From Zancudomyces culisetae HAW-14-8 (taxonomy: Eukaryota; Fungi; Kickxellomycota), in NCBI GenBank assembly GCA_052426225.1, contig JBNJNM010000015.1:186001-250000 (forward strand): a stretch of DNA of 64,000 nt, read 5' to 3'. Positions 1,369-46,948 of this stretch are shown here, piece by piece (positions within the stretch are counted from its first letter, which is position 1; each line of letters starts with the position of its first letter). The position numbers were made by a program, and so were the translations under genes. The notes below the pieces were generated by a model, which worked only from the letters and a program-made list of their open reading frames with translations, ran no database searches and was not told where the DNA came from.

Positions 1369-1851
1369 TTAAAGCATAGTCATCAACTGACCATTATACC
1401 TTCTAACCTCGGTCAGAATCTCGTCCAGTATTTCATTACACTTTGTTAGTACGTCTATCTTACTAATAAACGTCCTTCTCCTTATCACTATGTATTCTTT
1501 ACCATGTATCATCATGATCTCTCCCATATTTCCTCCTAACAACGATTCCATGATTCCGATTGTCTTTTTTTTCAGTTCTGTTGCTATGATTTTCATTTCG
1601 TCTAATTTACTCACTGATATTTCTAACAGGATTGTCTCCTTTTTGTTACATTTAATCACAGAGTTTACGTTATCATGAATAATTCTAATCTCATCCAACA
1701 TTTCATCCGATGCTTGATTGTTTACCAAGAAAGCATTATTGACCAGGGCCTCTAAACGCTCCACTACTGTCATTGCCCTTTTTACCGAGTTCACATTAGC
1801 ATTTGCCTCTACCAAGTGTTTTATTCGTCTCAGGGTCTCCAGATATTCCAT
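1369..1851 (-). CDS. hypothetical helical protein, 160 aa
   Basis: ATG-initiated ORF with protein-like composition, convergent with CDK5RAP1; no recognised motif. Confidence 0.5.
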   Translation of the reverse strand: MEYLETLRRIKHLVEANANVNSVKRAMTVVERLEALVNNAFLVNNQASDEMLDEIRIIHDNVNSVIKCNKKETILLEISVSKLDEMKIIATELKKKTIGIMESLLGGNMGEIMMIHGKEYIVIRRRTFISKIDVLTKCNEILDEILTEVRRYNGQLMTML

Positions 1852-4800
1852 AATCTATTTTAAATTCGTGTTAACAGTATGCAATTGAATTTTATTCTTT
1901 CTTGGCTATAATCTGTAAAAATCGGATGAACGGAAGAAAGCTTTACCTGGACTATATCAAACGTTGATCCAATTTTAAATTCTATTTCTGTTGGATCTGT
2001 GCTTTTTTGATCTTTGTCGAAAATGTATATCAACTATACATGTTTTAAGTGTATTTATTTGTCAGAAAAAAAATTAAGGTTCCTTGCTCTTCAGACCACT
2101 TTCCTTTCTTTCTTAAAATATCGCTACCATTACTACCACACAAAACTTAATATCTTACCAAATTTTTCATCTGACAGCCGAAAAGATCAGCTGTGCCTCC
2201 ACTTTTCTCGGGTACCTCATTTTCGTTAAGAGATCTTTGGAGTTTTTTTTTATAATTGAAAAATACAAATACACTCATATTAGGATCAACTGTAAAGGGA
2301 ATATATATAAATTTTATTTAAATGGTAAAATGGCAAAGCAAAAAAAAAAACAATAGAATCTTACTCTTCTGGATTGAATATCATAGTACAGTTTTCGTTA
2401 CTATCCACAATGTCGATACACTATTTAGATTAATCGTTCGTTCAGTAAAATGGCACATGTTAAAGTGCTATTCAGACTTTTTTTTTTGCTCTGGGATGAA
2501 CAATGTAGTTTTGCTTTACCTCTATAATTCGACTCTTTATCCACTCCAGGTTTTTGGCATACATCTCCCCAACAAGCCATTGGACCTCCTGAACCTAACA
2601 TTATGCATTGAATTACAAGGTTAAAATGTATGGATAAGGACAAACTCCAAGTAAGGTATCTCAATCGTATTCGAATATCGTCTTTACACCAGTTATTCAT
2701 ACAAAGTCCTCCTAAAGATTCAAATAGGCATAATGCCGTTAATGGTGGAAATTCATGTTGGCTTACCTTGGAAAATTCTTCTTCCAGCATTTCTTTCGTA
2801 TTTTTTTTTTTTTGATAGTGTTTTTTTTTTTGTAAACTTCTCTTGGACAATTTCAAGTTTATCGTATTTATTCAAGAGTAAAATAAAACATCCTAAAGCA
2901 GGGAAATAAAGCTCAAGTTCAGATATATGCACTTGGAATAAACCAATGTGTTGTATTTTTTAAGTGTTGGATGTCCTATTGGCTGCATTGCACCATTTCT
3001 TATTTTTGCAATTTGAAATTACCAAACTAGCCAATGGCATGTAAACAGGGGATTTGTAAGCCAATACGGTTAAAATCGATAAAATGGATACTATTTGATC
3101 AGCGCTACTAAAATGTTCGAGGAAACAGATTTAGCCTACCACTATGTGTCTGCTAATAAGCGTATCAAAATGCTATTGTAGCTACCTTTTGTTATTATGC
3201 GAGACTAGAAACTATTCAAAGTATTACTTTCCATTCATCATAACTGTTTGCTTTTCAAAAAAGAAAAAGTGAAAAACAGAACAAAATTATATTTTTGTCC
3301 AAGTTTGTTTGTATTCATGTTTTTTGGAAACGGAAATAAGTGGGCTCAGCTTGGCAAAACATGGTTATAAACCCTGTAAATACCCAACAATCTTTGGAGG
3401 ATACATCACAGAAAATTTGTATTAAAAAGCTGGGACAGTTGATTCTTTGGTAAGCTAAATGTTAAGATCTACCCTTGGTTCAACGTATTACAATGTAAGC
3501 AAACTTTACTCTGGAACATCAGTGAACATGTCACTTCCAACCACCTGTAGGTGTTGATTGACACACTATTTATTAATATAATACAATCCTCAGAGTAAGC
3601 TGACTCTGGTTGCAAAAAAAAAAAAGACATGGAGCCAAATACAATTCCCTTTTATTTCCTCAGATACCAACATATAAAGCAAATCGATCAGAGAATCAAG
3701 TAGACTTCTAATTGGTACATTTGTATATCTCACAAGTGGAATGTACCTAATATATTATGTGTATTACATTGCTTCTTCTTTTCTTTGTTCACGACTATTG
3801 CTCTAAAAGAAAATGAATCATTATGATGATGTTTCTATTGTACTCATCATAAAGATTTGCTGTGTTCAAAAATTACATATTCTGAGTCTAAATGGAAGGG
3901 TCACCTGGGTATCAATCCTAGTTCTCTGAGATTTATCTCTTCAGTGTTTTTATTCTTGCTTTCTTTTTCACATGTATGAAATGGATGTACCAAAAATGGT
4001 AGGATCGACACTCTCAAATATATTGTATTGCTTGAATTGACAGTCACAAAAACAGAATATCTAATTGTACTACAAATAGGTGATGTGGTATTGCTTCTAG
4101 GAAACAAAGTATGAATACCTTTGAAAGGTCGCACTACTCTTGACAGGCTCTTTGGGTTTGTTTTTATTAACAAAGATTTTATCACTATTTCTGGGAGATA
4201 TCTCCAGAGATACAATCATCCCCTATTAAAAAAAATTTTTTTTTGTTTTTATACGCCAAATAATTGGCAAGATGTTGGTTTGAAGTTCAGGCAGTTATTA
4301 TAAGTATCTCCATATTGAAGCAACATAAATGATAAATTAATCATTACATTAGTCTGAGGGTTATTTTTACGTTTTAGTTTCTTGATTGCTTGCACAGAAA
4401 CACATTCTGTAGTTACCCAAACCGACCGGATCATATCAGCTTTTATTGAATAAGTAACATTCTTGCATTCTTCTTGTACCTTGCACCTAGAACTAGAGTT
4501 AAGCTCAAATGTGAACAAACCCTCCTTTTATGCAGGCTGTTTCATTATTTTGTGCTATAGCTCAATTTCTGGTTCATTTTTTTTTGTTGCCCAAGCTAAA
4601 ATATGACTGTTTGTATCCAAAATTGAGCTGCCCTATATTTAACGACGATCTTGCCACTTCGGGTACTCCCTTTTCCACCTATTTCCTATAGGTCATTAGT
4701 GGTTTGTTAAGATTTGAACACCTAATCATATTCATATCCTACCCACTCTTTGCTACATTCTTTATTTTTTTAGATAATCCCGTTCATTATGCTAAACCTC

Positions 4801-6038
4801 ATAGTTTTTTGGTCTCACAGAAATTAAAAAAATGGATTGGCAATATGATTGGCTTTAATTAATAGTTGTCGAGACATTTAAATGCCAATTCCAAATTAGT
4901 GAAAAGGTGGCCGGATACTCTCTTTTACGTTCCGCTGGTTCGTTGTTTTGTTACTGTGTTATTGTTTGAATTTTTCCCTTCACTTTCCCCAAATTAATCG
5001 TAGACAAGTAAAATTCATATCTCTTTAACCGAAGAATTAGTAGATGCGAAACTGGAGCTTATTATGATAACAAATCCCCTTGTTTGTAGTCTGGCAGTCA
5101 CTTTTTTCTGCATTCTTCTTTCTGCATTGAATCCTTTCGCATTTTTTTGCATATTTTCACATATTTAATCATATACATATATATTTAGAAAAGTATCAGT
5201 TGAAGTTGCTGGAAAATCAGTCCCTAGAATGTGATTATTTATAACCAATAAGCCCTCCATCAAGCATCAAACATCAAGCACCAGGAGGTAAGCCACCTTT
5301 TCTTTCTACATTCGTAAAACACCATAGTACAACCTTCACACAAACAAAAATCGCATCAAATATCATTCGACGCCTAAATATAGCCTTATTAAATATATAT
5401 ATTTTTTAATTTTGCGTAAACATGGGTTATGGTTGACGTTTTGTGAGCTTTTAAAAACGTATAGATTTTTAATTTTGCAACGTTCAGTACACAAGTCTGT
5501 ATACACAAATCGTTACTCTATCATAATTTTGGCGAATTATTATATTTGAAATCCAAGCTTTTTATTATTATTCAAACCATTAAAAGGTCTGGCTTTTTTT
5601 AATTTTTATGTCTAAATATTAGCGATGAAATAACCTAAATATAACTATAGTTTTGTAATGGCTGGTAATCTCCATTTAATGAATTTTTTTTTTTTACTTT
5701 TGCCTTTGCCTTTGCTCAGTTCCAATTAATTTCATCTTCGTTTCTGCGCCATTTGGTCTCATTTATTAAGCCTCGAACACCAATATTTGTTGCTTAATGC
5801 AAATACATGCACATCCAATTGATTATGGAATAACAGGCAATTTTTTGTTTTTTTTTTGCTGTTGTATATTTCCCTAGAGAAACTAAAAGTATTTAAATAT
5901 CACTTTCCCATTTATAGACCTTGAAACTAAAAAGGTCATTTGGAACTATTCTGTTTTTGTATTTATAATTTATATTTAGATCCCCGTTTTTTCAATTGTA
6001 AGGGTACCAAACCTGTAAGTAAATATTAAACTTGAAAA

Positions 6039-6170
6039 ATGATGAAACTAATGTATGATCCAGAAGGCATGAAGAACAATAATATCGAACAGGAGCAAGA
6101 TTATCCGGTAGTTAGAAAGCCGATGTCAACACCAGATGACTATGTATATGGCCCCTCCGGTCACCCATAA
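6039..6170 (+). CDS. small ORF A, 43 aa (MMKLMYDPEGMKNNNIEQEQDYPVVRKPMSTPDDYVYGPSGHP), paralog of 24412..24531
   Basis: Translated by hand; 11/19 identical core residues with ORF B, 6 of them encoded by synonymous variants. Confidence 0.65.
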   Translation: MMKLMYDPEGMKNNNIEQEQDYPVVRKPMSTPDDYVYGPSGHP

Positions 6171-6303
6171 CAGAAAAATTTGATGTGCGGAACCCTCTGT
6201 CACTTTGACTGATACCGAGTATGGATCTGAAGTTGTTTAAGCTCTATTTCATTGAAAGGGTTTCTAGCTACCGACAAAGATCGGGTGTAGGTATGGTAAA
6301 ATG

Positions 6304-6338
6304 AATAGATAGGATAGATAGGATAGATAGGATAGATA
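6304..6338 (+). repeat. 9-nt tandem repeat (ATAGGATAG) about 3.5 copies
   Basis: aatagataggatagataggatagataggatagata read directly. Confidence 0.7.
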
Positions 6339-9300
6339 CACAAGTTGTATAAGCAGCGATAGAATACAGAAACAGTTTTTTTTTAAAGAAAGAGTAGACC
6401 ACTAAATTCTATAGAAAATGAATTCCGTTGTAGAAGTCGGTGATTATACACAACACATATTACGATATTTTTATTTGATTATTTTAAACAGTATACTTGC
6501 CGGTATTGATACTCATCCTGTATGTTTCAGAAGTAAGAGTGCCATGGCTACCTTAGAAGTGATGATTTGTGATCCACTTGCAAAAATAAAATAAAATAAC
6601 GGATAAAACGAACAGGACATATATGAGATATCAATATTGGCAAAAGATAGTTAAGCCTTTTGATTCAGATTACTCCCATTTATAGTGCATTAATATCTTG
6701 AATACGACTGGTTTATTTCTTACTAATAAAAGTTAGCTATTGTATTAACCCAACATGCTTTTATCTATTTATGCTTAATCAAACCATTAGCTGAAACTGC
6801 CTATAGCCATTTCATGTATATAAAAAAAAGAATGGCAGAATATAGTGCACAGATAATAGTACTAGTTATGATTTCAGCTCATGCTTGTGTGAGTGTTGCA
6901 CCCCCAAACCTTCATGATGGTCTTTTATCTTTATTTTTGTTTTTGTTTTTATTTTTACAAAAAACGAGAACCTATGAAACTATATCATTTCCGTTTTTGA
7001 GTAAAGTCAGCTCATTCCCACTTCTCCATGGTATTTTAACAAATAGACTTGTAATAATGCAAATAAAGTGGGGGGGAAAGGAGAGGAGAAAAAGTTACCA
7101 ACAGGAAATGCTGGTATATAGATGAAAGTGTTAATCTTGTGGAAGAGCCTACCAGTTTTAGCGTTTTATAAATCCTGGTAATTAACTTATATTTACCAAT
7201 TTTACCACTTCTACCCAACAATAATTGTCAGTATTTATTATTTTAGTAATTACTCATTTGTGTAAACATCAAGAAATAAAAGTAGCCTAAAAATGACCTC
7301 CGAAAATTTCCTATTCCGTAATTGTGCAATGATTTTGAGCTAGAGATAAAGTTGACCTCCTCTTTATATGTGAACCGCTTAATTCTTGGTTATACGTAAT
7401 TTAACCTTAATTTAGCTACAGGGTATTAGCAAATCAAGCCAGAGTGTTGTAAAACGTTGATATCATATTCCCATTTTTGGCTTGTTAATAATCTGCGGCA
7501 AATATAATAGTATCATTTGATTTGAATTACGTTTATTTATAATACGGTGATTCTGATTATCTTTGCTCAGACAAAACTCGGTTAGCTTATTTATTGTTGT
7601 ATTATATGCATTTTATAAACCATGCAAAATGTAACAGTTTGAATTCTAACTTACGAAGCAACCATTTATTTCATTTGTTACTTAAAGTTTTATCAAAAAA
7701 GAAAAAGAAAAAGCACTACATAAAACTAAAAAGTAGGATGAATTATCTTTTGGATTAATTGGCCGACGTTGATATTACACACTTTTTTTGGTTTACACAA
7801 GTCAAAGTCACGTACTTTTTCGAGAACAAAGCAAGAAATATCAACAACAACAACCGATTTACTTGGCCCAGCTTTTTATTTTTCCAACTTTCACCCTCCA
7901 CAATCCTCTACAAATTTATCTCTGTTATCTTTTGAGTTTTTCCTGGAACTTTCCTTATATTTAAAGACCAAACCAATTTTAATAGTGTGTAATTTAGTGC
8001 ACAGCCATGGAAGGGATGAATGGACAGAGTTATGAATGATAAATAACTAAAACCCAGCAAGCTAGTATCGACATAGAATATACAGTACAATGGTTTTTTT
8101 TTAAAAAAAATATTGCATGAGTTTGGATGCAAGCCACATTTTATCTATAGACGAATTAAACGTACAGATAATATCGAGCCAAATAAAAGCGTCAGTAATG
8201 TTTGGCTAGGCAACTCGGGAATTTCGATGCTCAGCATTTTTGCACATATACACGTATAGGCAAATGCTTGGGGGCAGGTAAATAAAGCTGCTTTTAATTT
8301 CGTACATTTTGTATTTATGGTTTTTTTGGATTGTACGCAGAAAAAAAAAAGGGAGCTAAAAAAAAGTCTCAAAAACAACGTCATTAGAGCTGTTACTCTA
8401 CACACGAAACTCATATTTGTACATCTACACTGTTCATTTCTTTTTCTAGTTGAGTATCCAAGAAGGAGGGTGTGTGCGTGTAAAGTTAGGAGAGTCTGCT
8501 TTGTGAGTGACATCACAACAGTGCTTACGAAAAAGTGCTTTTTTCCCGTTTCCTCCCCCTTTTTTTTCCAAAACTGGTGGGAGAATAACATCTCTGTATC
8601 CTTTTTTTTTCTGCTGGCTGTGTGGACTAGTATTTACCAACCAACCCTCTCCTCTTCCCACCACTCTGAGTTGTTTTTGTAAAGCGTTATTGATAATTAA
8701 GTCGATTCGTTATACAAATATTTCTCAAATGAAAAACAAAAACCCTATTAACGTGTATTTTTGAAAAGATGAAGTGCGCAATTTAATTGGAAAATAAATT
8801 TATAGAGGTGGTGTGAGATTGCAGGCTCATTAGGTATCAAGCATAGTGTATATTGCCTGTATTGTTTACTTGGAACCACTGAGGTTAATGTACAAATTAT
8901 AACATGAGTGTGACTTTTAAAATGTGCATATTAAGTAAGGTAAAAGAAAATGAAGGGATAGACTATGTTAATACAAAGATACCCCGAAAGATGGAAAAAT
9001 ACCTTGTCATCAACTATCTTTTGGCTTCAGTTCAATAAGCGTATAAGCTTTTTTTCTTTTAAATTTTTTAAAATCTTTTTTGAGGTAAAATCAGCGCAAC
9101 AAAGTTCAAAGTCAGATGGTAGAAATAAAGAGGAGCCAGCAAATAGAAACACTAAGATTAGTTATTTATTTGCGTACATTTCAACAACAAAATTTATATG
9201 TAAAGACTTGCAAGCTAGAAGATTTGTGTTTTGCACCAATTGGTGGCCAAACAGATAAAATTATTAGAACACTAATTGATTTAAAAATGCCTAGTTAATA

Positions 9301-9493
9301 TATCCTAGTTTGTTTCCTAAATACGTGAAAGATTGGTATTTTGTCTAATGTACAATATTGTAATACTAAACCAAGCAAACAGCTAGGAATAATTCAAAAT
9401 AGAACCAACAACGCAAAGGTCAACAGAAACCTCGAGATAAGGCTGTAATTGTAACTTTTAAATAAATCAATCGAGAAAAAAAAAAGGAAAAAA

Positions 9494-11887
9494 ATGTATT
9501 CGGAGGGAGGAGGAGAAAATGCAGAAATACGAAAATATGCAATACAAAGGTTGGCAAAACTGTTCAAACATCAAGATGATCTAAAGTACAAATTAGATAC
9601 ACTGAAGAATAAGCTGACACAAGAAAAGTTGCTAATCGATGCACAGCTGAGTGCGGATGTGCAGCGACAATTTGATGATGTACAGGAAGGACTAGAATTG
9701 CTCTCAGCAACAGGAGATCAAATAAAGCTTGTGAGAACAGAAATGAAAGAGGTTGATGCACTTTGTTTTGATGCACAGAGTTTTTTGTCAAATTACGACC
9801 GAATCAAAAAAATCTCAATAGTGCATAAAAATTTTGAACAAGCAGAGGCCTTTTATGTAAAGTTTAAAAACTTTAATGAGCGGTGTTTAGGAGTTGGCGA
9901 GATGTTACGAGAAGCCAACATTAATATGGAAAAGTATGATTATAATTTGTTGAAGATGCACTACCAGATTTATCAGCTCGAGGATTTTAGAGAACAAGCT
10001 GTTACTTTGACTGTAGATTGCGATGAGGATGTAAGAGAGACGTTGACAGATGTGTTTTTGGATTTTGATAATATTAGGGTGGCATTTGAACACTTTTTTT
10101 GGGAGGTGGCACGCAAATTGTACGAGCTAGGCTCGAATGGTCAACAGGCACTTATAATTCAGTTACTAAAAGTGATTGAGATGGAGGAGCGGGCAGATCT
10201 GCAAAGCAAAAAAGAGCAGGAGAAAATAAAGGAAAACAACAAGAAGATGGGGACGAATAGAGTGTATGGTACAGCAGGATTAGGAGGGTTTGGGGGTGGA
10301 GGAGGAATGACGCGAGTCAATGGGAGACCCGAGCGCAAAATCAAGGGATATAAAGAGAAGTTTCTTGGAATAATAGGCGATATTGTCAAGGGAAGAATAG
10401 AGGAGTTTTTCCAGGAAGTGGCAAACGAAGAAGAGGAAGTAGTGAACTCGACAGGACTAGTGATAGATGACCTAATGTTTGTGACAGAAAGCATAGCACC
10501 ATGTTTTCCGGCACACTACGATATTTTTAACATGTTTGTAATGAAATACCACAGCGCAATAATTGGCGAGGCGAACACAATGGCAGAGGGCAGCCATATA
10601 GAGGGACGGACGATTTTGCAACTGCTGCGATGGGCGAGAGAATACCATTCGATGATGAGGAAGGAACTTGGAGTCAGCAAGGAGATACTGGTTCCGATGT
10701 TGTTGGGCGACCGCGAAGAGGACCTGGTGGCACAGTACTTGGGTTTGGTTGTGGGAAAGGTGCATGAATGGGTAATGAACCTGATGCGTACTGAGACAAA
10801 GGAGTTTTTGGAGCGATCCAAGCCACCAGAGACAGGCGAAGGAGGCGGGCAGTATGTGATGCAAGGTAGTGTGATTATGTTTGAAATTATCAACCAGCAA
10901 ATTGACTTGGCAGTTGAATCTAACCGCGGCAAGCTGCTGGTCGACTTGGTTGTTGAGTGCAACAAAATATTCAAGGCAACCAATACTCAATGGTTGGAGA
11001 TTATCAGTGCTGAAACCACAAAGCAGATAGATCGACCTGACGAAGCAGCTGAAGGCCTGGTGGACTATCTGATGGCCCTAGCGAATGACCAGTTGCGGTG
11101 TGTTGAGTTTGCTGAAGCTATTCTGACACGACTATGCGAACAGTTGAGCCGTAGCTACCAGGAACGGTTGTCGACCGAGCTGGGGTTGGCTATGGAGGGG
11201 TTTATGGAGGTGGCGCAGCGGGCGATTGTGTCGCTGGCCGAAATTGTGTTTAGTGATCTCAAACCCATTTTTACAGCGCAGTTTTCCAATGAATGGTATG
11301 GCGAAGATTTGTTGCAACCAGTGATTGAAACTTTGCGAGATTATTGTAACGATTTCGGCGCACATCTACATGAGTTTTTATACAGCCGGATTATGGCTGA
11401 GTTGTTGGAAAAATACGTTGCTAACTATATCGATTCTATTCACCATAAATCAGTGCGGTTTAAGAAGGGCAAGTGTGTAAACAAGATCAATAACGAAATC
11501 GAGACTATGACAAGTTTCTTTGCCGAATACATGTTGCCTGCGGATAGCAGCGAGGATGCCGAACAGCAGCAGCAGCGCAAGCTGGAATCAAAAGAACTGG
11601 TTAATAAATCGATGCTTGCCTTGACCATGCTGGTATCCATTATCGATGCCACACCTACCATGATCTTTCTTGAATACTTTTCAATGCTCAAAACTTTCCC
11701 CGATGTTCCATTAATTCTGATAGAAGACATTCTCACCAAACGTGACGATATGGAACGCAGCCAGATCAAGTCAATTATGGAAAACCTCAAGGCAAAAACC
11801 AGTGCTGAAAGCAATACTGCCATGGCCAGAAGTGCCGCAAATGCCAATACGGTCTTTTCAAAACTGATTCACTACAACTTGGCTTAG
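9494..11887 (+). CDS. SEC6: exocyst complex component Sec6/EXOC3, intronless, 797 aa
   Basis: N-terminal A.QRLAKLFKHQDDL..KL...K..IDAQL pattern, LL..HY.IYQLE.FRE, LMALANDQLRC and the overall length match fungal Sec6. Confidence 0.9.
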   Translation: MYSEGGGENAEIRKYAIQRLAKLFKHQDDLKYKLDTLKNKLTQEKLLIDAQLSADVQRQFDDVQEGLELLSATGDQIKLVRTEMKEVDALCFDAQSFLSNYDRIKKISIVHKNFEQAEAFYVKFKNFNERCLGVGEMLREANINMEKYDYNLLKMHYQIYQLEDFREQAVTLTVDCDEDVRETLTDVFLDFDNIRVAFEHFFWEVARKLYELGSNGQQALIIQLLKVIEMEERADLQSKKEQEKIKENNKKMGTNRVYGTAGLGGFGGGGGMTRVNGRPERKIKGYKEKFLGIIGDIVKGRIEEFFQEVANEEEEVVNSTGLVIDDLMFVTESIAPCFPAHYDIFNMFVMKYHSAIIGEANTMAEGSHIEGRTILQLLRWAREYHSMMRKELGVSKEILVPMLLGDREEDLVAQYLGLVVGKVHEWVMNLMRTETKEFLERSKPPETGEGGGQYVMQGSVIMFEIINQQIDLAVESNRGKLLVDLVVECNKIFKATNTQWLEIISAETTKQIDRPDEAAEGLVDYLMALANDQLRCVEFAEAILTRLCEQLSRSYQERLSTELGLAMEGFMEVAQRAIVSLAEIVFSDLKPIFTAQFSNEWYGEDLLQPVIETLRDYCNDFGAHLHEFLYSRIMAELLEKYVANYIDSIHHKSVRFKKGKCVNKINNEIETMTSFFAEYMLPADSSEDAEQQQQRKLESKELVNKSMLALTMLVSIIDATPTMIFLEYFSMLKTFPDVPLILIEDILTKRDDMERSQIKSIMENLKAKTSAESNTAMARSAANANTVFSKLIHYNLA

Positions 11888-12009
11888 CTTTATAATATTA
11901 CACTCTTCATTATTATTTTCGTTTTTCTTGCTTATTGAACTATTTTATTTATTTAATCTCTCGAGTACTTTTAAAAGGAAAAAAAAAAAAGACGATTAAT
12001 TAATTTAGT

Positions 12010-15000
12010 TTATTTCTTTGCAGGCGCTCTTTTCCTGGGTTTTGCTGCTGGTTTTGCTGCTGACTTTGCTGCTGACTTTGTAGATGTTGAACTGCCCTTG
12101 CGCTTATTTTTAACACTAATTAAAGTATCAGTACCGGGTTCATCTTCACCATTTCCATTCGTACTGTCGTCCTCTTCTTCTTCATCAATTACATCCTCAA
12201 GGTCTGGCTTAGCCATCATCATTCCACCGCCCTTCTTTGCTCTACCACCCTCCCCTCCTCCAGAACCAGCCGAACCTCCTTCTGCAGTAAATCTATGACT
12301 CTTTGTATTAAATGTTCTAGTAAACGCATTCTTCACTTTAGTTTCAATACCCGTCTTGATGTATTGCGAAAGTAGCGCTTTTACCATATCAATCCGCCGT
12401 TTTATTTCCTTGTCATGTTTATCATTTCCAGCAGAATAAAAAATGTTGACAACTGATTTGACCATCAAAAGCTCAGTAATTGTGTCAAAATCCTGTCGTG
12501 TCAAATTGTATCCATCCATTATGTCAATCACGTGCTCAATGGTCTCTTTCACATCACCATGCTTGCCAGCTTGAACCAGCGGCCACACAACCGCCAAAAA
12601 CAGTCCACCCAAGTACTCTTGCCGCACTTGCAACTTGTCTGCTGTAACACTTGATCGCAAATGGCCTTCAAGCTCACTAGCCAACCGTAAATTCTTATTG
12701 CGACTCGAGTTTTTGCCCAGCCATGCTGGGAAGTTGTACATTGCGTTGCGGCTGCCTGTTGCAAAATACGCAGGCCGCACACACGACAACACTGAATGAC
12801 TAGGCATCAGACTCCAGTTCTGGCTTGTGTGGATCGATGTCTCTATTAGATCGGATTCTGAAATCGAATCAGCCGCCCGGCTCAGCATCTCCAGATTTGC
12901 TACATCATACGGAATATTTTTTTCAGCTGCAAATGACCTTGCCAGGCTGGAATTGTTACTCAGATAGTTTTCTTGAAGCATCAATGGAATAATCATATAG
13001 TCATTGAAGTACAGATTGATCTTGTCGCTCATATTTATATTTTGGAATGCACCCGCATTCAACAGCTCACCGATAACATCAAATGGACCTGTTTTGATTT
13101 CTTTTTTACTGACTGCTGAGCTATTTTATTTTATTTTATTTTGTTTTGATATTTCAGTTATTAGTTAAAATAAATACACTATATGTCTAGACTTAGAACT
13201 TACAATTGCTTTCCTTGGTCATACGTCATGGTATCGTTAGACAATTTCCACGTCGATAAAATATTTAACATTTGCCTCATATCGGACCTTGTTGATGCAC
13301 ATAACTGGTCCAACGCATTGGGATCTGCTTTTAGTCCCTCTCTGAAACAAATACTCATCAGTCTCGACCTAAGACTTGCAGCTTGTGGCCTAATTTGTAT
13401 ATTTTTCATATCATTATAAATAATTTCGTTTTTTATTATTATTGCTATTTATTAATTTATTTATCTACTTGGTTGTTTAAACTTACTTTATAAATTTGAT
13501 GTCTTCGCAATAGTTTGCTAATGTCCGCATTTTCGGATCCATTCTGTCATTGCATATACAGATGATTGGGACTTTAGTTTTCTGTATCATCTTACTCAAC
13601 TCCGCTGTACCACCTCTGTCACCACTTGACATTCCATCCACCTCATCCATGATCACTACCACCTTTTTACCTATCGCTTCCTTTTCGTGTGTATCTTTGC
13701 GCTCGATGTTACCACTAAAGTATTCAGTTATTGTGTGGTTTCCTGTCAACACTCCCAGTTGATTCTACGTTTCGTTTACAGTAACAAATATCATTTATCT
13801 TTATCTCTTGATTCTTCACACCGTTTATTTATATATCAAGTTTCTATCATTACCGAAATCGAGCTTTTGTTTCTAACATCGCTGGCGTTATACTCAATAA
13901 CATCCATTCCCAAATCCTTCGCCACCAACCATGCCGCTGTGGTTTTTCCTATCCCTGGAGATCCCGAAATTAGTACTGCTCGTTTTTCTGGTGGCACAGT
14001 GTAGTTCCTAATCAGTTTTTTTTCTTTTAATAATCAATATTCTCTCTTCTCTCTTCTCTCATTCTTTTTTTCTTTTTCTTTTGTGACCATTAGAAACATA
14101 AAAGTGAGTAAAAAAAGCAACTTACCAACTAGACAACCAATTATAGACTCTATCTATTGCAGTTTTATTTCCACAAACTTCTTTTAGCGTCTTTGGCTTG
14201 TATTTATCCACCCACAATTCACTGTCTGCAACCATCTCCGGCTGCTGTTGATTTTTTCCCCCTTGCTTCGTTGACTCGGCTGGCTCCTGTTTAGCCTCAC
14301 GCATTTCTTCTTCCCTAATGCTTTTATCGATAACTATTTTTTCCACAGCTTTTACCAGCTCGGTCGCACTTTTCTTACCTACCGTGGCTATCCCTTCTGC
14401 TTTCTCCGTTTTTATATCTTGTGCATCTTTCGTATTAGTTTCGTCAATATCCATTTGATTTGAACCAAGATCCTTTACATTTTTGTCTTCACCGCTGTCC
14501 TCTCTAAAGCTCTCAACAAGCCCAACGAATCCATCCTCATCCAATGCGCTGACATTGTGTTTTTTTGCTGATGTTATTTTGCTAGAACCTGGGCTGTCGC
14601 CCAAAATCAAAAATGTTGTCTTTGAACTAACTGCAGAGGTGACTCTTCCACCATACCTTTTGATTACGTCTGCCACAGTCTCGCGCGAATATGAAGGAAG
14701 CTCACCAGTTATCACAAATGTCATACCCTATCCACGTTTAATTCTACTTTTAATATCATTCCCTATACATATCCCGGAGCTACACATCCAATCGTTCTCT
14801 CACCCCACTGCTCAAAACAAAATCAAAACTAAGTGTGACTTTACCTCTAAGCATCCGTCTGCCCCAACAGGAACTGCCCTATCTTGCAGTGAATCTGTTT
14901 TCATCTGCTTCCCTGCCCAAAAACTATTCGTGTTCATACCCATAGATGTAATTACATACTTTTATATACGTACGCCCACTGATATATACATATAGACTCA

Positions 15001-16873: not shown

Positions 16874-18145
16874 CTAAACCAATCTCTTCTTTCCAGATCT
16901 AGATTTAGCCTTTGATTTTTTATTGCTACTTTTTCTGGGACCTTTGGGCACCCTTGTCCCCTCTGGCCCATCCGCCACAATAGGTTCCTGTAGAGGCTTT
17001 TCAGTACTACCTTCGTTTATTTTTGGGGTAGATGGAACTGGTTTGCCAGTGCTTTTTGCAGGTGCTTGGCCCCTAGATACCATTGGCGGGCTGTTGCTAT
17101 TTCTTACTCGCCGTTTACCCACTCTATTGGTCTTTTTGCTTAGTGAAGCGGGTTTCTCTTCACTATCATTCAAGTTGTTGCTAGACCTCTTTTTCAAAAT
17201 GGAACCACCTGTAGTTCTTCCTTTTTTGCTTTTATTATTTCTTCTCTGATCGTTCGGCCTCCTATCAGACTCGAGAATGGCTTTAGCACCTCCAGAGGCA
17301 CTACTTTTCCCGTCAGTAGATCCAGTGATGGGCACCAATGCTGGATTGAGCTTGTTAATACTTGAAGTATCAGCTGAATCATGCAGTTTAGTCTTTTCGG
17401 AGGCGGTTTCGCTTGCAGTCGCCACACGCTCAAAATACTCTCTGGAACTTTCCACCCTTTCCCCAGGGTTGGTAAGGAATAAATCGTCTTGAAGCACGCT
17501 TTGTGGTTTTACATTTGGTTCTAAACCTTTAGCCCCTTCGCCTTCAAAATATTGTACGCGTTCCTCAAAGTTTTGAAATTCAACAGATGTTTTTTTTGAA
17601 ATTCGTCCAGAGTTGTGGGTATGATCGTCGTGAGAGCTCCCACTTAGGTTATATCCTTCCTCGCCTATTTTGTATTCAAAGTTTTTTATCAGGTCTCCGA
17701 CCTTCCCAGGTGATTTTGTTTGTGGTGTGCCGCTCATTAGCCCACCTGTAGCGTCCGCATTATCACTTGTGCTAACTTTACCGTCTAATAGATTTACAAT
17801 TCTTGAGCGCTGTGAGCCGACAGATTTCCTTTCGATTTTCTGAATTTGTGTACCGAATCCTGCATCTATTTTTATTCCACATTCTTCATTAGTTCAAACA
17901 ATACCAAGATTCAAAGGCATACAAGTAAAGTATCGAAAAAAAAATGGTACGAGAATGGCATGCATATAAAAAAGGGGTCACGAACCTATAGTGGCGTATT
18001 CGAGTCCATTTGTTGAAATACCCTCGTCGGGTTCCGCCGCTAAAGGTTGTTGATTTTCTACCTGAACCTGGTCATCTATCGTTATTGCCACAGAATTATA
18101 ATCCTGGTCTTGCTGATTACCCAATAGGCCATCCACTATTATCAT
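16874..18145 (-). CDS. hypothetical low-complexity Ser/Lys/Gly-rich protein, two exons (intron ~17867..17985)
   Basis: ATG at 18145, GTTCGT donor and AATAG acceptor join in frame to the 287-aa ORF; no domain recognised. Confidence 0.65.
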
Positions 18146-20468
18146 TTTACGTTTTTTTTTTGTTAGTATTCACAATTTGTTCTGTATAGAGATAGTTAGA
18201 ATAATGTATGAAAAAATACACAACTTTTTCATTTTAGTATCAGATTTACAATATCAGTAGAGCTCTGGCATCAAAAGGTACATTATTTGCCCTTTAATTC
18301 ACAATTACCTTCATTTCCATTCGAACTGTATGCTGTACTCACTTTCCAATAAAATGCCACCCAAAACAATACAAATACCACAAAAACTGCCAAAAATATT
18401 GCCAAGAGCATTGCGTTATCTCTAATAATCTGCGTTCACGTTTAATAATTATCTAACCCTATGTACAACAACAAGAATATTTTGTATTTTTTTTTTATTT
18501 GCATTTTTCAAAATAGTGTATCAACCACATACATACATGCCATTTCTAGACCAAAATCATTTTACAAAAAAAATATTTTCTTCCATTCTTTTATTGGTCA
18601 ACTGTTTCACGAGCTTTGAACCTTTTCCTTAATAAAACTCGAGTAAATTGATTTAGGTTTTAATATGTGTTTTACATCAAAATAAAAATTTCATTTTTCT
18701 TAAACTGCGATTTGCGTAATTTACTAATGCACACATGGCTTTACCAATTATTTTTTGGTCCCCTTTTGTTTGATGAATCTATATGTGGTAATTAATAAGT
18801 TTTATATTTGGTTGGCTCTTTGCCTAATTAAAAACACCTTTTTGAGGTCAGCCATTTGCTTAAAAACTTGGTATCAAATTTTGCAATTATTTGCAATTAT
18901 TAACGAGTTCAAAGTCCGAGCACATTTCTTTTAGTTTTTTACAACTTTATTGTCATGTAGATATTAAAAACACTTCCCCTCCTTTCAGCTGGTTTGACCT
19001 TCAAGATATCTATGGCAGTTGAATAGAATAATTTATTTAGAGTAATGGTTTAGTCTTTAATGTTCTTGTGGTATTTTCTCGAGTTTCATAGAACTGGCGC
19101 ACCTTGCTCATTTTTCGTATGTATTATGGCTGCTATCACCAAATTGATGCTATAAAACATAGAAAGTGATAGTAATTGTTAAGAAAAATACGAGTGCACA
19201 CAGGACTCCATCAACTCTTAACTTTGCGAACTGGTTAACCAGCTCTCCTTCAAGAATGTGCACTGTGCATATGGGTTGGTTATTTGGGTGTGTGTGATTT
19301 TTCAATTGTTTCTTTACATACAATTAGATTCTCATCTGGCCCTGGTTATGTACTAACCACGCAATCTAGATGCAATAGTGGAAAATGCACACTTATTAGT
19401 ATTTATAGTGCTGAAAATATAGTTTTATGTCTTTGGATAAGTTCAAGGCTTTTGGTGTAGTACATATTCTTGGATTTCCTTTGCTTTACTTGCAAGTGAC
19501 CAGATTAACAAAAACGTAAACTGAGCAATTATGTCATGTGAAAAAGTATGCATATCCCTAAATGACAAAAAAGAGCTATTTAGTACGTTTATTTACTGTG
19601 CACACCATCCTTATTATTAGTATCTCTGGTTTCCTCCTATATTCTTCTATAATTCACCACTTCTATCATATCTGTTCTATCTTAGAACCTATCAGTAGAC
19701 GTCTACATCTTTTGAAGTGAATATAATTGCTGTGAATAGAACGCTTGTGGTTTTGAACACTAAGAGCTGTTTGTGTTTGAGTTCTGTTGAAAAGAAAAGA
19801 AAAAACATATTTTATCATCGTGTTCACCCACACATAGCTAGTGGCCTCTATCGAATTATATCATGAATGAACTTTTATCTCCATTATTACCTTTTTTAAC
19901 TGTTTTATGTAATATTGTAATGGCTTATAAAAGCAATGTCAAAAATGGAACAGAGGGATTTATAGAACATCAGAATAAATAGAACAATAAAACAATAGAA
20001 CACTAGAACAATAAATAAATAGAATACGAGTAAATGGAAATGGAAATTGTGGACTAAATTCCAATAAAAAATCCCAAACCCCGTGATAACCCACCAAATC
20101 CCCCATAAAAAAACAAACATTGGTATTGAAACAGATCTTGTCACACACTTTTAGTTCAAAAAAGAGCACCAAGGTTTACTTCTAATTGATCAGCTAGTGG
20201 CCAATAGCTTTTTTCATATATTAAAACCAGCCCTCCCATTTAAAAAAGGGCGAGGTAAAAGTAATAAATATAGCTACATTCTTTCTCAGTAAATACAAAA
20301 TAGAACATAGGTTTGATAGCCGGCGTTCTAAGTTCGTTTTTTTGATTATAATGCTTTTATTTGTTATGTCTTTTTTATTGCTGCCACATACGTTGATCTA
20401 GCATGAACTTTTAACGACATACAATATGGCGCATTTTACCAGCATAATTTAATAAGCATTTTACAAAA

Positions 20469-20471
<3 letters not shown>

Positions 20472-20506
<35 letters not shown>
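20472..20506. repeat. (AC)n microsatellite
   Basis: About 17 AC units read directly. Confidence 0.9.
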
Positions 20507-20509
<3 letters not shown>

Positions 20510-23500
20510 ATCTCCTCACTAGTCTCTGAACAGCTATTAAGCAGTAAGATACACATAAAGACCAAAATTCGATAAAAGCAAACATTCTATTGCTGCGGAA
20601 GTTTGCTGTGGTGGTTTATACTCTTTTCCCATTTTTAAAACATTGTTTAACTATCGAAACTAGAAGTAAATAAAAAATTTAGAAAAGATGATTCATACGT
20701 TGTAGTGTTGACTTTTATAGCAACCTGTATATCAGATTGTTTTTTAGAACTATTTTCCGCTCTTCTGCTTTGCCTGCCTTCCTAGATGAGGCAATATTGG
20801 CTTTTTTATTTTCAAACTTGTGGTATATTTAAAAACACATCCATCTAAGGACCATGTATGCTCAAAAAAGAGGTTTTGAATGCATTTAGATGACATTGTC
20901 TATTTTCAATAATGCCTTTTGAGGTAAATACGTATGTGCAAAGGTTGAGTGGTGTTACAGCCTCATGAAAATTTTATAGGGGCTGCACACCTATTAAGTG
21001 AGCATGAACTTGGGCTTAGATCCAAACATTAATTTGCTCGTTTCTTTGTAGAACAGCGGTTCTATCAAGTTTTTTTTTCAAATAAATAAAAAAAGAGCAA
21101 AAAAATTTTATCCGCATTTTGCTAATCAACGTATTACCATAGTTTTCTTTAGTGATTAAATAAAGGACATATTATTAAAAAATCGTGAAAAACCAAGTCC
21201 AAAAAGCCTCAGATTCAAGGATTTACAATATCAGACTTTGTTTGTATCCTCATTTTAAAAAATAAAAAAGACCTTATGTTCTTAAACTGAATAGGAGCTA
21301 AAGTAACATGTATGTATGATGGATCTATCCATTTGAGCTCACATTTCGACTCGCAGTTTACGTTTCTTTAGAGAAATCGATAAAGTGAATACATACTAAT
21401 TCTGCAAACACTGGGATCGGTCTTTTCGACCGTGAGAATCGTGTACGTCTCTCTACTTACTTTATCTATATTTAGGCCCAAATGATTTTTTTTCACTGCT
21501 ACTACTTTTTGCTCCTCTTCTTTTAGATACACGCGATGCTATACAGTTTATGTATGTATAGCTATGCAAAGTCGCTTTCGCTCTAAAATCCTGGGCACAA
21601 ATTGAAGAGGAGCATGACCCTACTAACTCACAGCTTTCAACCATGATGTTTGGGTAACAATATTAAAAAAAGGATATGATGAACAGTGGATGATACATGG
21701 TCTCAATATTCCAATTCACTAAAATGATGCAAAAACTCGGGAATGATTCACTTGTGTAAACCATAGCTTCATGTTCTTATATCAGAAGAGAGTGTTTTTG
21801 ATGTTATTATCTCATAAGGCCCGTTATGTATAAAACAGATATTGTGAATTTACACAATTCTCTCTGGAGATTCTTAATTCTCACTCGTTTTGGCTCACAC
21901 TAGGTGTAGTTCTATAAAAATCAATAACAACAACGTGTAATGAAATGATGTTAAGAGAAAATAGTATATCCACACCGCAAACATCACCAGGAGTAACTCG
22001 GTTGCAATCAATGAGTTTTTTTTTTTTGAATCAAATGTAATGATTCGAATTTCTCTGTTTCTTTTATTAACTATTCTGCACTTTTTTTTTGCATTTATGG
22101 GATACTTGATGGTATCAACAAAGTTATATGAGAGCATATACATTGATGGGTGTATATTCTCAAAACCAAGACTAACCAGGTGGATAGATTTGCAAGAGAT
22201 TTTAATGTACTTCACATAATATCTGCGAGTAAAACATAGTGCAAGTGAATATTGAGTTTTTCACTCTTTTTTTTTGTAGTAATGGTAATATCAAGAAATA
22301 AATATTTCTGATATTACCAGTACACGTGTATAATCAAAACTAGTAGCAGGCGACTTGATTACAGGCTCGTGAAAATTATCTTTACATACTAAAATAATAC
22401 CAAAAAAACCACATTATAGTTGTGGTGCGTTTACCTTGGTCACTCGTGCGCACGATTTTAATATACTTTGTTTTGTTTGCTTATACTTGTTACTTTAATA
22501 ACTTGAACACTCACTATCCAAGTCACAAATAGCGGAAAATTTGTAAGTTTGCCTGTCATTTGATAAATTTTTTTCCGTCATGCTATTTTTTTAAAAAAAA
22601 AAAATTACTTGCGAATTGATGGCGTTCTGAGCCCTACAATGACGAGAATATGGAACAATGTTTGTAAAGCGGGTATGCTGACCACACCATATGTGGGGAT
22701 CTGTAGAGATTTACACTTTACAGCAAACTTCAGCTATCTTTTAAAAACCAACATGCTGTCTCCCTGTTTGAGAAAGTGATATCACGCATTCCCTGCTTGG
22801 TGGTTACACTGTATTTTTTATGAGTAAAAATAACAGCTATTTCAATTTGTGTAGTTTGAGTATTTTTGAAACCAGGTGGTAATAGGGATGTGAAGGGTAA
22901 CAGATATATTTTTAAAAAAAATCTTGTATACTGTTCGGTTCATGAGGGATCGTAGTGAAATAATACTACTCATTTGGTAAAATAAGAAACATAACAGTTT
23001 ACTAAATGGCCCAGTATCATCATTGCTTTATTCAAAGTTACACACATTACCTTCATCCTTCTTAAAAAAAATTCACACAAAATCTTTGGCAGACTCTGCT
23101 CATCCTTAAAGTTTGTTCATTTTGCTTAGACAGGCCATACAACAAAGAGAGTGCGGGTGCGGGTGCGGGTGACGACGACTGTTGGTTCGGTTGTGCTATA
23201 ATAGTATTATTCTAATTTTCGAGGCATTTACTGTTTGAGGGATTTGCATACTGATTGGAGAAAATTACTGTTTCATTCAGCTAGTATTTGCTTTTAATAC
23301 GATGAGAATATGTAATTCTGATAGGACAATCCAAACGTGTGGTCTTGTTGGTTCTTTAGTAGCATTTTTTTCAGTCCAAAGCAGTTTAAATATACAAAAC
23401 TAAAATAGACAGTCAGATGTTCTAATTAGTGCACTATAAACGAACAAATCGTGGAAACGATGGTGCCAAAATGGAAAGAAGAAAGAAGGGAAATACATAT

Positions 23501-24411
23501 GTAAGTACGTATGTGCTGTGTTCTGCTGCATTGAGCAGGTTTTGTTAGAGAAAGCTGGACTGAGGAAAAGAAAGGATAAATTTACCAATATTTCCATGGA
23601 TACTTGTTGGTGATAAGCGCAGGATGTAGAAGGAGAGTATAGCCCGAAGAAAGGAAACTTAGAATCAAGACCAAAACAACTAGTTAAGCTTTAGTTCTCT
23701 TAGTAGTAAAAGCAAGCCCCCTTGTACAAATAAGAATGTAGATCTATTACATTTGCAAAGGTCATATTTTGAGAGATATGAAATATTACAATAGTGTTCC
23801 GAGACAATGTGAACATTTCTACATGCTCATTTTATTTGCTTGTTTTACTCTTTTTTTTTGTTCAAATTTATCCGTGAATAAACAGAAAAGTCGAATTCTT
23901 TTTTTTAGAGAGCATAAACCAGACTCCCAAGGTCTCGTATGTCAGGCCTTTCTGAGTTTTGCAAAGACTTAAATGTCTAACAGTTTTTTCCTTAATCTTT
24001 TTTTTTTTTTTTAGTCTGTTTTGAGCTTTTGTTCTTTGCTTTCAGTTCTGGACTAAAAAGAACTAAGCTAAAATAAGTATTTTAGATTCTAGAACCTTTG
24101 TCTTCAGTTAACTAGCAGTATGTAATGATCTCATCTGTAATTATTTTTTTTTTAAAAAAAGATTATTAACGAAACCTAAAATTGCAGTATTGTAATTTAT
24201 GGGATATCTAGTTTTGAAAATGTATATAAATGGTATGTAGTTCGCCTTTTCTTTCCATCCAGAAAACAAAAATAAAATCACCAGTAGATTCAAAAGTATT
24301 ATTTGTCTTTTGGTATTTACATTTGTACCAAGCAAATATAAAATAAGAAAATATTAAGCTTAATCTAAGGCATAGAGAATCACGGATTTGTAAATAGTAC
24401 GGCATACATCA

Positions 24412-24531
24412 ATGAAAATGGAATATGGTTATTTAAAAGCATATATGAATGGTGGAGAACTCGTTGACGAAAGAGACTATCCGGTAATAAAGAAGCCCAC
24501 ATCCATACCTGAAGACGATGAATACTTTTAA
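24412..24531 (+). CDS. small ORF B, 39 aa (MKMEYGYLKAYMNGGELVDERDYPVIKKPTSIPEDDEYF), paralog of 6039..6170
   Basis: Translated by hand; shares MKxxY and ExDYPV[VI][RK]KPxSxP[DE]DxxY with ORF A. Confidence 0.65.
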   Translation: MKMEYGYLKAYMNGGELVDERDYPVIKKPTSIPEDDEYF

Positions 24532-26883
24532 AGCTGGAAAACAAGGATGTGGTGCCGTTTGATCGAAGCTCTTACTCCATCACCCCTCTTTCTATGCCAA
24601 AAAAATATATGAGCAAGTATAGATGCAAAAACAAAGAATAATAAATCATTAACTATACAATCAACACCAGAAACACATTTTGTACAAGTAGACTCCTGTT
24701 TAGCGCAAAGAAAACAAAGTACCCTGCGATTTTTTGCAACAAAAAACTGTTTATATCTGCAATGTGCTTATATATACTAGAAGTTTATCTAAGAGATCCT
24801 CTCCACTTTCCCTTATTCAATCTCTTTCCTCCTTTGCGGTGAACCGGTACAGCTGTATTATCCGGCTAAGTTGGGTTAGACTATGCACAATCATTCTTTT
24901 ACCCTCTTTTTTTGGATAAAATTTTATTTATACATCTTTATTTTATTGTTCTATCTGTAGATTTTTAATCAAAGCCAATAAAGCAACATAATTTGTGAAA
25001 AGTGCAAAAATGTTTGAAGTAAAAAAAAGATGAATATAATACACAAAGGTTCAAACCAGATGTGGGCGGAGAGTAATAGATGGAGTTGAAACTATTGATT
25101 GATGATGTTTATCATATTGTATTTTTACAAGCGTCGAAAAAAGAAAGGATGAGGACAATGTTGGTGAATAGGCGGGGGATATGAACAATGGTGGTACTAT
25201 TAGAAAAGTAGATGATGCGGACTCTAAACTTTTATCTCAAAGCGGGGGTATGAGCATGAAAATGAGTAATGGTTTGATGTTTTGTTTTATGTTTTATGTT
25301 TTGTTGTTTTGTTTGTTTTGTTTGTTTTGTTGTTGCTTTCTTTTTCCATGCTCTAATTTGAAATTGGAGCAGAAATCGGAAAAGAATCTGCATCTGATTC
25401 AGGGCTTACTTTTTCCAAATTCACAACTTTATTCTCTTATCCGGGCCAATTGGGTTTCTCTATCTGGCAAAAAAAGCATTTGAAATGTGTATTGTTTTAG
25501 TTGACATGGTCCCCGAGTGTGAAAAAATAATATTCTACGTGACTCAGGTAATATTGTTGGAGTTATTATGTTGACGCGCATATCGGTTACTTGTACGGTC
25601 AAAATGCTTGGGTTTAATGTTTGCGCACTGCTTATGTATGTACATAAAAATGAGGTTTTAATCTTTTATTTTGCATTTAATTATATTCAATAAATATCCA
25701 CTTTTAATGAGAAACACAAAAGCATAAAAAAACGGAAACACAAATTGGGGGATGAGGGAAAGAGATGATATGACTAACCTGTGTGTTACAAAAATATACC
25801 TGACTAAACTTTTAGAAATTTAGAAAAGTTCTTTTTTTTTATGGTGAGTAAAACGTTCTTGTGTGGTAGTCATTTGACACTTAGGCTAAAATCTGCAATT
25901 TACCTTTTTTTGGGGAATTTATCACAAATAAATCAGATATGTACGTATATATAAACTCAGTCATGGATAATTAAATCTACATCTTTTTTTGGAAAGAAAA
26001 ACGAAAAATAACGGACAAAATGCAAATAAGAAAATAAAAGCGCAATAAAGGCGCTAAAAAGTAGATTAATTAAACAGTCAAAACAATAATGACATCAGAC
26101 GACCAATTGGACAAAAAAAAGCGCTATTACTTATTGTACTGTATCAAATACAAATTAAAGGCTTTTGGCGTGAGTGTTTGTGGTGTGTTTCCTGAATGAG
26201 GTTTTTCTGTTTTGCGAGAAACATTTTTCTTTTGGGTATTTTTAAACAAAAAAAAAAGCCAAATTGAATAATAAACAAATTGCGCTACAGGAAAGCAAAA
26301 AATTGAAACAGTGAGAGGTGTGATTTACAAGTGTGGTTTAGCTTGTCAAAGCTCTTACATATGTATATATATTATTTAATACGTATTAACCGGTTCGATT
26401 TTATTGGTAGTGATAAAAAAAGCGTAAATTATGGAAATGCGGTAATAAAGATGAAGATAAGCAAACATTGAATACATCCAATAATGTTTAAAAATGACTT
26501 TAATGGCTGGATCGGTAGATTGAAACATTTTAATGTATTGCTACTAAAGTTCACAAGTAAACATTGTCGTATTTGTTATGTTTGTTACCTGGATGAGTCA
26601 GTTTGTTCGGAAGTAGATATATGTGTGACACAATGAAAATGGCGTAGATTATTCTAGTGTTAAGACATGTTCTTGTTGCCATGACTATTCAAGTCATTAC
26701 CATGGAAAATTTGAAACGATAATCTGAGTAATATTTTCTATTTGACAGGTAATCAAGCTGACTTGAATAAACAAATACATAAAACCCAATGTGAAACCTA
26801 AAAAAGCAGAGTTGAAACAATAAAAGAAGCAAAAATAAAAAAAATAAAAACTAGGTAGAAAAAAAATAGAAACGGGATATGGA

Positions 26884-31239: not shown

Positions 31240-31696
31240 TATTCTGCCTTTTTATCGATTGTATTTATATTATAAATTCAATCTCGTAGTGTGGGCTAAA
31301 TACACTCTTTAAAAAAATCAATTTCTTGGTATATGAATGTTTGTGTTCCTATGTCTTGGTTTTCCTTTAATGACTAAAAAGAATCCACTGTTTTCAAAAT
31401 AATTGCGGATTATAAAGCGCAATTGGAGTATTTGAAATCCAGTAGTTTAAGAATTTGAACTCCTTTAGTACCAATGACTGCCAACTCTTTATTTTCGCTT
31501 TGGCAGCAATTAGGTGTTGAATGCTCTAAATGGAAAAAAATGAAAAAAAAAGGAACAAGCTACCACCAAAGCGAAACACATGCTTTTTGTATGAAACTAC
31601 ATTTGATTATTTTATTTTTTAATTCATTTTTATTTTGAGGAACATGTTACTAAATCAACAAAAACAACAAACAACGCAAGAAAAATACAAAGGACA

Positions 31697-32722: not shown

Positions 32723-32987
32723 ATGATTCATATGTCAATATATTTTACTGTATTTAAACAGTAATGAACATTTGTCAAAATCAGATTTAATGTTATTAAA
32801 AAGTAAAGCAATAAATTACCTTTTTAAAAATACACGAAAAACGTGGTGGAACCTGGGTCTTACACGAGGTTAAAAATAGTGAAAAGTTATCAAAAGCAAT
32901 TGGGATACCAGGCGCTGAGTAGTGCATAAAAAATATATGTTAGAAATGGAAAAGTAATCCGCAGCTGAGAAAAAAATAAAAAAAGGT

Positions 32988-33069
32988 TGATGACTGTGGG
33001 GTTCGAACCCACGCATGCGAACATATCAGGGCCTAAACCTGACCCCTTGGACCACTCGGGCAAGTCACC
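32988..33069 (-). tRNA. tRNA-Leu(UAG)
   Basis: GGTGACTTGCCCGAGTGGTCCAAGGGGTCAGGTTTAGGCCCTGA...GGGTTCGAACCCCACAGTCATCA; long variable arm; T-run terminator downstream. Confidence 0.95.
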
Positions 33070-33074
33070 ACCAA

Positions 33075-43084: not shown

Positions 43085-43148
43085 TTTTCTTTCGCTAGGT
43101 ACACAACCAGCATTTATATACATATAATAAATATAAATAAAGTCAATC

Positions 43149-46916: not shown

Positions 46917-46948
46917 CCCACCCAGTCCCGCCCTAACCTAGCTCAACC

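Follow-up and report, generated by a model that had tools for sequence, protein, structure and literature searches.

Small open reading frames (sORFs) of fewer than 100 codons in intergenic DNA have been accepted as micropeptide genes or orphan small genes in fungi. Such genes escape annotation pipelines and lack detectable homologues in other lineages, and their products are hydrophilic and probably disordered; the accepted fungal micropeptides have transcript, footprint or peptide evidence. Conserved-peptide upstream ORFs (uORFs), such as the arginine attenuator peptide of CPA1/arg-2, keep the peptide rather than the DNA, and may sit in a leader beside an intron. Fungal pheromone precursors are likewise tiny, fast-evolving, often duplicated, intergenic and overlooked by annotation; the a-factor-like ones carry a C-terminal CAAX box, and the alpha-factor-like ones carry a signal peptide and Kex2-flanked repeats. 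At the level of short motifs, 14-3-3/basophilic-kinase phospho-motifs are of the RxxS/TxP type.

Here, we were interested in two sORFs, named A and B, which lie 18.4 kb apart on the plus strand in strain HAW-14-8 of Zancudomyces culisetae, a harpellid gut fungus (Harpellales) of mosquitoes. The whole stretch of DNA that was analysed, 64,000 nt of contig JBNJNM010000015.1, is referred to as the window. Its sequence alone had given rise to the original prediction that A and B belong to a micropeptide family. The reading favoured below, to which we give about an even chance, is that they are a species-restricted pair of paralogous small genes, predicted to encode acidic, probably disordered peptides of 28-43 aa with the motif [RK]KPxSxP[DE]D.

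The window and its two spacers

The PacBio-HiFi assembly of HAW-14-8 comprises 27.2 Mb in 26 contigs with 35.56% GC and 8,484 genes; the reference annotation is RNA-supported, and the RNA-seq data were deposited under PRJNA1254182 (PMC12611240). The Z. culisetae genome that was searched for further copies comprised 27.09 Mb in 25 contigs. The window is AT-rich, with a GC content of 35%.

ORF A is housed in spacer A (1851-9494), which extends to Sec6 (9494-11887, plus strand; 56% identity to Furculomyces and Smittium Sec6). ORF B is housed in spacer B (17737-26884), which extends to TRAPPC10 (26884-30522, minus strand; 99% identity to a Z. culisetae protein). Both spacers contained only junk-like ORFs, none of them credible, so that the surroundings of ORF A were indeed gene-poor as had been described. 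Each spacer was single copy in the 27-Mb genome. In the older NCBI annotation, spacer B is blank, TRAPPC10 and its nearest neighbour having no gene in between.

Because the older NCBI assembly of Z. culisetae showed 98.4-99.4% identity to the window over 17458-33000, it could be used as a second strain. Between the window and this assembly, SNPs amounted to about 0.3-0.4% over 22309-33000, in spacer and TRAPPC10 coding sequence alike. The interval 17458-22506 was more divergent (98.4% identity), and an 18-nt T/G-rich insertion was present at 25304 in the older assembly. ORF B was unchanged in both strains, with the closest strain differences at 22992 and 24630. This identity carries no weight, because the SNP density was only about 0.3%.

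Several other elements of the window were recorded. Downstream of Sec6, RFC1 begins after about 120 nt (11887-12010) in Z. culisetae, and the zf-CCCH gene of about 200 aa, which is located on the minus strand just past Sec6 in Furculomyces and three Smittium species, is absent there. In one Coemansia species, the annotation fuses Sec6 and a CDK5RAP1-like radical-SAM gene into one protein of 1319 aa. A cluster of small-RNA genes occupies 32988-34938 on the minus strand, with a pair of tRNAs separated by 5 nt (32988-33069 and 33075-33146), a U3 snoRNA (34297-34595) and a third tRNA (34867-34938); a 207-aa ORF that reads through the tRNA pair (32890-33513) is probably spurious. At 38675-41127 on the minus strand, three ankyrin-repeat ORFs stand in tandem (311, 319 and 186 aa) and form a local paralogue cluster with 22-28% mutual identity.

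Two types of mobile element were also seen. A DIRS-like retrotransposon at 42700-47320, which is GC-rich (50%), contains a long ORF (43156-46827), an overlapping reverse-transcriptase-like ORF (44051-45865) and a gag-like ORF (43149-43985), and its inverted terminal repeats (about 42715-43180 versus 46845-47316) are 83-100% identical at the peptide level. A LINE-type element at 58190-63674 has an ORF2 of 1248 aa, preceded by an ORF1 of 543 aa, and truncated copies of its 3′ end are found at 52706-54097, 57787-58136 and 47467-47616, with 72-98% identity. Between these elements, a 438-aa ORF (54643-55959, minus strand) with a signal-peptide-like start and two types of long tandem repeat, Gly-rich (GGRGGMGGAGGFS) and Asn/Gly (GNGNIGSGNGNFNKGSGNGNLNNGFLN), looks like a secreted or wall protein.

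Two small ORFs with a common peptide core

ORF A (6039-6170, plus strand, stop included) reads as 43 aa, MMKLMYDPEGMKNNNIEQEQDYPVVRKPMSTPDDYVYGPSGHP, and ORF B (24412-24531, plus strand, stop included) as 39 aa, MKMEYGYLKAYMNGGELVDERDYPVIKKPTSIPEDDEYF. A TGA at 6033-6035 stands in frame upstream of ORF A, and the open frame of ORF B begins at 24394. The view that the two ORFs are not tails of a longer ORF was borne out.

The two translations share a core of 27 codons, running from a shared Met to a shared Tyr, at 6069-6149 in A (MKNNNIEQEQDYPVVRKPMSTPDDYVY) and at 24445-24525 in B (MNGGELVDERDYPVIKKPTSIPEDDEY), both on the plus strand. The cores could be aligned without gaps and contained 12 identities among 27 residues, including DYPV, KP, S, P and D, with a BLOSUM62 raw score of 71. 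For an inner core of 19 residues, the original prediction had listed 11 identities, six of them with different synonymous codons. Both counts and all six codon pairs were correct exactly as listed, and the ungapped match proved to extend to 27 residues. Both frames reach a stop 1-6 codons past the core, A ending in GPSGHP and B in DDEYF. Each ORF is intact, with start and stop, and stays below 100 codons: 43 codons for A and 39 for B, or 33 and 28, respectively, when counted from the shared Met.

The flanks of the two copies were compared by blastn and tblastx, and nothing in common was found between spacer A and spacer B outside the core. The best blastn match between the spacers was the core itself (51 nt, 72.5% identity, including an exact TATCCGGTA). 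These results agree with the earlier statements that the flanks lack similarity and that the resemblance is one of peptides, restricted to the ORFs. The N-termini of both peptides are hydrophilic and no repeats are present; no signal peptide was found, as had been noted. The hallmarks of pheromone precursors, i.e., a C-terminal CAAX box or a signal peptide with Kex2-flanked repeats, were not found in the A and B peptides.

Similarity and composition compared with chance

Six-frame ORFs from the non-repeat part of the window were compared all against all. The A/B pair was the top pair after a true ankyrin paralogue pair, with a score of 71, and the next non-genic pairs scored 58, 54 and 53. When the window was shuffled with its dinucleotides preserved, 2 of 210 runs reached a score of at least 71. 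When the tail in real sequence was extrapolated, crudely, up to about 0.3 such pairs were expected per window. Because the real tail gives about 0.3 per window and 451 genome windows were read, the similarity alone is only borderline.

The main rival explanation is chance, i.e., that unrelated short frames in AT-rich non-coding DNA happened to have similar hydrophilic translations and were noticed among many windows. A hand Karlin-Altschul calculation and the real all-against-all tail place such pairs at about 0.07-0.3 per window, and the shuffles at about 0.01, so that several chance pairs would be expected from 451 windows. No relatives were found in word, profile or metagenome searches (see below). 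The codons of the identical residues also fit chance. Five of the 11 identities used the same codon, against about 4.6 expected by a hand estimate from codon usage, indicating that the DNA retains no trace of common descent above chance. The different synonymous codons had been taken as the pattern of purifying selection. The codon facts stood but the conclusion did not, because any pair chosen by peptide similarity gives the same pattern and the argument is circular. The codon pattern is compatible with saturated ancient paralogues and also with a chance pair picked by translation.

The composition of the two ORFs, on the other hand, argues against chance. Codon log-odds were calculated for in-frame codons versus intergenic trinucleotides, and reached +12.9 bits for ORF A and +11.3 bits for ORF B, the five other frames being negative in each case. 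The conserved part contributed 8.2 bits in A and 12.4 bits in B, and the N-terminal extensions 3.9 and -0.1 bits, respectively. Among 397 non-genic ORFs of at least 30 aa, A and B were the 4th and 5th by codon log-odds. The first two ranks were held by ORFs at or near exons of flanking genes, namely 17981-18169 (minus strand), likely the first exon of the neighbour gene, and 30718-31002 (minus strand), just upstream of TRAPPC10. All other chance-level pairs were hydrophobic, low-complexity junk with negative log-odds. Among the top pairs of shuffled sequence, both members had at least 11 bits in 4 of 300 (about 1%), and in none of the 29 pairs scoring at least 60. Moreover, both ORFs coincide with GC islands (0.42-0.48 versus 0.22-0.33 in the flanks; for ORF A, 0.42 versus 0.27-0.33). 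By these measures both ORFs look protein-coding.

Coding-like composition and shared architecture, including the candidate introns described below, discriminate between the two explanations where similarity alone is borderline. A rough estimate of the joint chance of the pair over all criteria was 1e-4 to 1e-3 per window, in which the codon test and the intron parallel were discounted, both having been defined after the data were seen. With these points on either side, we consider a chance pair rather unlikely.

Candidate introns before the conserved Met

Candidate introns were found at the same place in both copies. Candidate intron A (6015-6063, plus strand, 49 nt) would run from GTAAGT at 6015 through ACTAAT to AG at 6062-6063, and candidate intron B (24390-24439, plus strand, 50 nt) from GTAAAT at 24390 to AG at 24438-24439. 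Each ends 5 nt before the conserved ATG. An alternative pairing for intron A would join GTAAAT at 6019 with AG at 6066. The splice signals originally suggested farther upstream of ORF A, at about 5287 and 5979, are likewise putative. Under a strict definition, the intron-before-ATG configuration was present at 4 of 850 intergenic ATGs, including A and B, and under a loose definition at 3.8%. Introns of the 50-nt class do occur here, because a 58-nt intron is annotated in neighbouring TRAPPC10. The shared intron-like configuration, in the same register and before the same Met, is a further point against chance.

Candidate junction A joins T to AA, which gives a stop in the peptide frame. Intron A, if used, would therefore be a 5′ UTR intron. 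Splicing would remove the upstream ATGs, which are not conserved, and would make the conserved Met the first AUG. In the spliced model the ORFs would be 6069-6170 (33 aa) in A and 24445-24531 (28 aa) in B. The sequences appear compatible both with this model and with the unspliced one (43 and 39 aa).

The same region bears on a second alternative, that A and B are no stand-alone micropeptide genes but belong to something longer, either as terminal or internal exons of unrecognised multi-exon genes or as parts of long non-coding transcripts. The similarity starts right after an AG at both loci, as it would at an exon boundary. Relative to the mean gene spacing (27.2 Mb for 8,484 genes; PMC12611240), the spacers are 2-3 times as long, and they contain other coding-like segments on the same strand, e.g., 7067-7165, 23129-23179 and 25172-25279. 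However, the frame upstream of candidate junction B consists of 14 open codons without an ATG, and junction A gives the in-frame TAA, indicating that neither core continues an upstream coding exon. The earlier concern that a 6015..6063 intron might make A an exon of a longer gene was not borne out, and a longer ORF through this intron was rejected on account of the in-frame stop at the junction. The stop that follows the core within a few codons in both frames also speaks against longer genes. Furthermore, no second conserved segment was detected between spacers A and B, and nothing in the spacers was conserved with related species. Exons of longer genes are, in our assessment, improbable.

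Substitution pattern of the core

Cores A and B differ at 32 of 81 nucleotides, with 8, 8 and 16 differences at codon positions 1, 2 and 3, respectively. When the same 32/81 differences were simulated neutrally, a peptide score of at least 71 was retained in 0.03-0.14% of runs, and the frame stayed open in only 26-35%. This P value (≤0.0014) applies between two paralogues, in a pair originally picked by peptide similarity. In the A/B DNA alignment, frame 0 scored 71, and the other five frames scored 5-53 and contained stops. Given homology, the substitutions were far more conservative than neutral drift, and to this extent the earlier claim of selection on the peptide was supported.

A shared RNA fold of A and B was sought and none was found, the consensus reaching -1.2 kcal/mol with 3 pairs and showing no covariation or compensatory pairs. 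Rfam gave no match at either locus; its matches in the window at the gathering threshold were the three tRNAs and U3 elsewhere. The simulation, the scores of the other frames, the absence of a shared fold and the Rfam result together suggest that, should A and B share an ancestor at all, it was the peptide that was preserved.

These tests also address a third alternative, that the two copies have no peptide function today, being the decaying remains of a duplicated gene or of regulatory DNA, or else an RNA or DNA element that is conserved as such. The finding that the core is also the best blastn match between the spacers would suit such an origin, but neutral decay at 60% nucleotide identity very rarely keeps the score, and keeps the open frame only in a minority of runs, in the simulations above, the RNA searches were blank at both loci and no parent gene was found elsewhere in the genome; we regard it as very improbable.

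Two other origins were rejected. A snoRNA had been considered since ATGATGA at 6039 resembles a C box, but copy B does not have it and Rfam is blank. A transposon or repeat origin is excluded by the single-copy spacers, by peptide matches numbering only two and by the absence of a Pfam match; the original prediction had named a transposon fragment as a possible alternative, and the single-copy state of both spacers speaks against it.

Search for relatives

Peptide, profile and degenerate-DNA-pattern searches of the 27-Mb genome found no third copy. The number of copies is two, and the label of a family was not sustained. Searching with the core in this genome and in related fungi had been proposed as a check; in the genome and at syntenic loci of four related species, it gave no match beyond A and B.

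The exact 43-, 39- and 33-aa products had no database record; the exact products of Sec6 and of the neighbouring 160-aa ORF had none either. A protein word search with the A+B alignment found no relative, and a profile search of 1.84 billion representative proteins gave nothing at E ≤0.001. The peptides had no match in Pfam at E up to 10 and no relative in the ESM Atlas. A metagenome scan with the degenerate DNA pattern gave 0 matches. These blanks weigh little, because gene prediction seldom turns short ORFs into protein entries.

The comparison with relatives covered five syntenic loci of four species. For Furculomyces boomerangus, Smittium mucronatum, S. simulii and S. culicis this was the CDK5RAP1-Sec6 spacer, and for Furculomyces the TRAPPC10 locus as well. 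The CDK5RAP1-Sec6 synteny is kept in S. simulii and S. culicis. At none of the five loci did a peptide match reach an E value better than about 1, nor was any segment of the spacers conserved. This result is also of little weight, because the relatives are distant, as the 56% identity of Sec6 indicates.

Discussion

The reading that we favour is that A and B are anciently duplicated, lineage-restricted small genes of Z. culisetae. The product would be 39-43 aa long if the transcript is unspliced, or 28-33 aa if a 5′ UTR intron of roughly 50 nt is removed. Selection would have kept the C-terminal core, [ED]x[DE]YPV[VI][RK]KPxSxP[DE]D..Y, while synonymous sites and all flanking DNA would have diverged to saturation. 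The similarity, the coding-like composition, the single-copy surroundings and the non-neutral pattern of substitutions are what the sequences show; transcription, splicing, translation and a function would be consequences of this reading. Against a pair of paralogous genes stand the two copies in one species, the lack of any homologue and the blank annotation in spacer B.

As for what such peptides might do, the core serine is preceded by basic residues at -3/-4 and followed by a proline at +2 and, at +3/+4, by acidic residues. We take this context to be akin to basophilic-kinase and 14-3-3-type motifs and to a CK2-type S-x-x-[DE] site. The serine might tentatively be seen as a phospho-acceptor within a docking site, and because its context fits such a site, the peptide might have a partner, e.g., a kinase or a 14-3-3-type reader, which it binds or competes for. 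A short-linear-motif peptide of this kind would conceivably dock on the kinase or 14-3-3-type reader or keep other ligands from it. A bolder extension is that A and B represent a Harpellales-specific family of roughly 30-aa peptides, encoded by tiny two-exon genes in intergenic deserts. In this obligate symbiont of insect guts, their docking core would be phospho-regulated and would titrate a partner of the kinase or 14-3-3 type. We regard this as a long shot.

If the pair is real, trichomycete gut fungi would have their first described small-ORF peptide genes, and an RNA-supported annotation of 8,484 genes (PMC12611240) would still miss this class of gene. If it is not, the pair may serve as a calibration case, in which a peptide match of about 32 bits in one 64-kb window is only borderline. 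It would then show the need for independent criteria, e.g., coding log-odds and shared gene architecture.

The pair can be set beside the known systems. With pheromone precursors, A and B have in common their tiny size, fast evolution, duplication, intergenic position and absence from annotation. They differ from them in having no CAAX box, signal peptide or Kex2-flanked repeats, and in the acidic nature of the conserved part. With 14-3-3/basophilic-kinase motifs the resemblance is one of pattern only: in both cores, [RK]-K-P-x-S-x-P precedes acidic residues, and the residue at -3 is Lys, not the Arg of the RxxS/TxP motif.

The likeness to conserved-peptide uORFs lies in the conservation of peptide rather than DNA, and in the candidate layout with an intron alongside. 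As to location, Sec6, which begins at 9494 and is the next gene on the same strand, lies 3.3 kb downstream of ORF A, and ORF B is followed by no same-strand ORF of at least 110 aa before 32258. Among the uORF peptides known in Pfam, none resembles the A and B peptides. Compared with accepted fungal sORF micropeptides, for which transcripts, footprints or peptides are at hand, A and B are defined by paralogy within one genome. They share with these micropeptides and orphan small genes a length below 100 codons, an intergenic position missed by annotation pipelines, homologues confined to their own lineage, and hydrophilic, probably disordered products.
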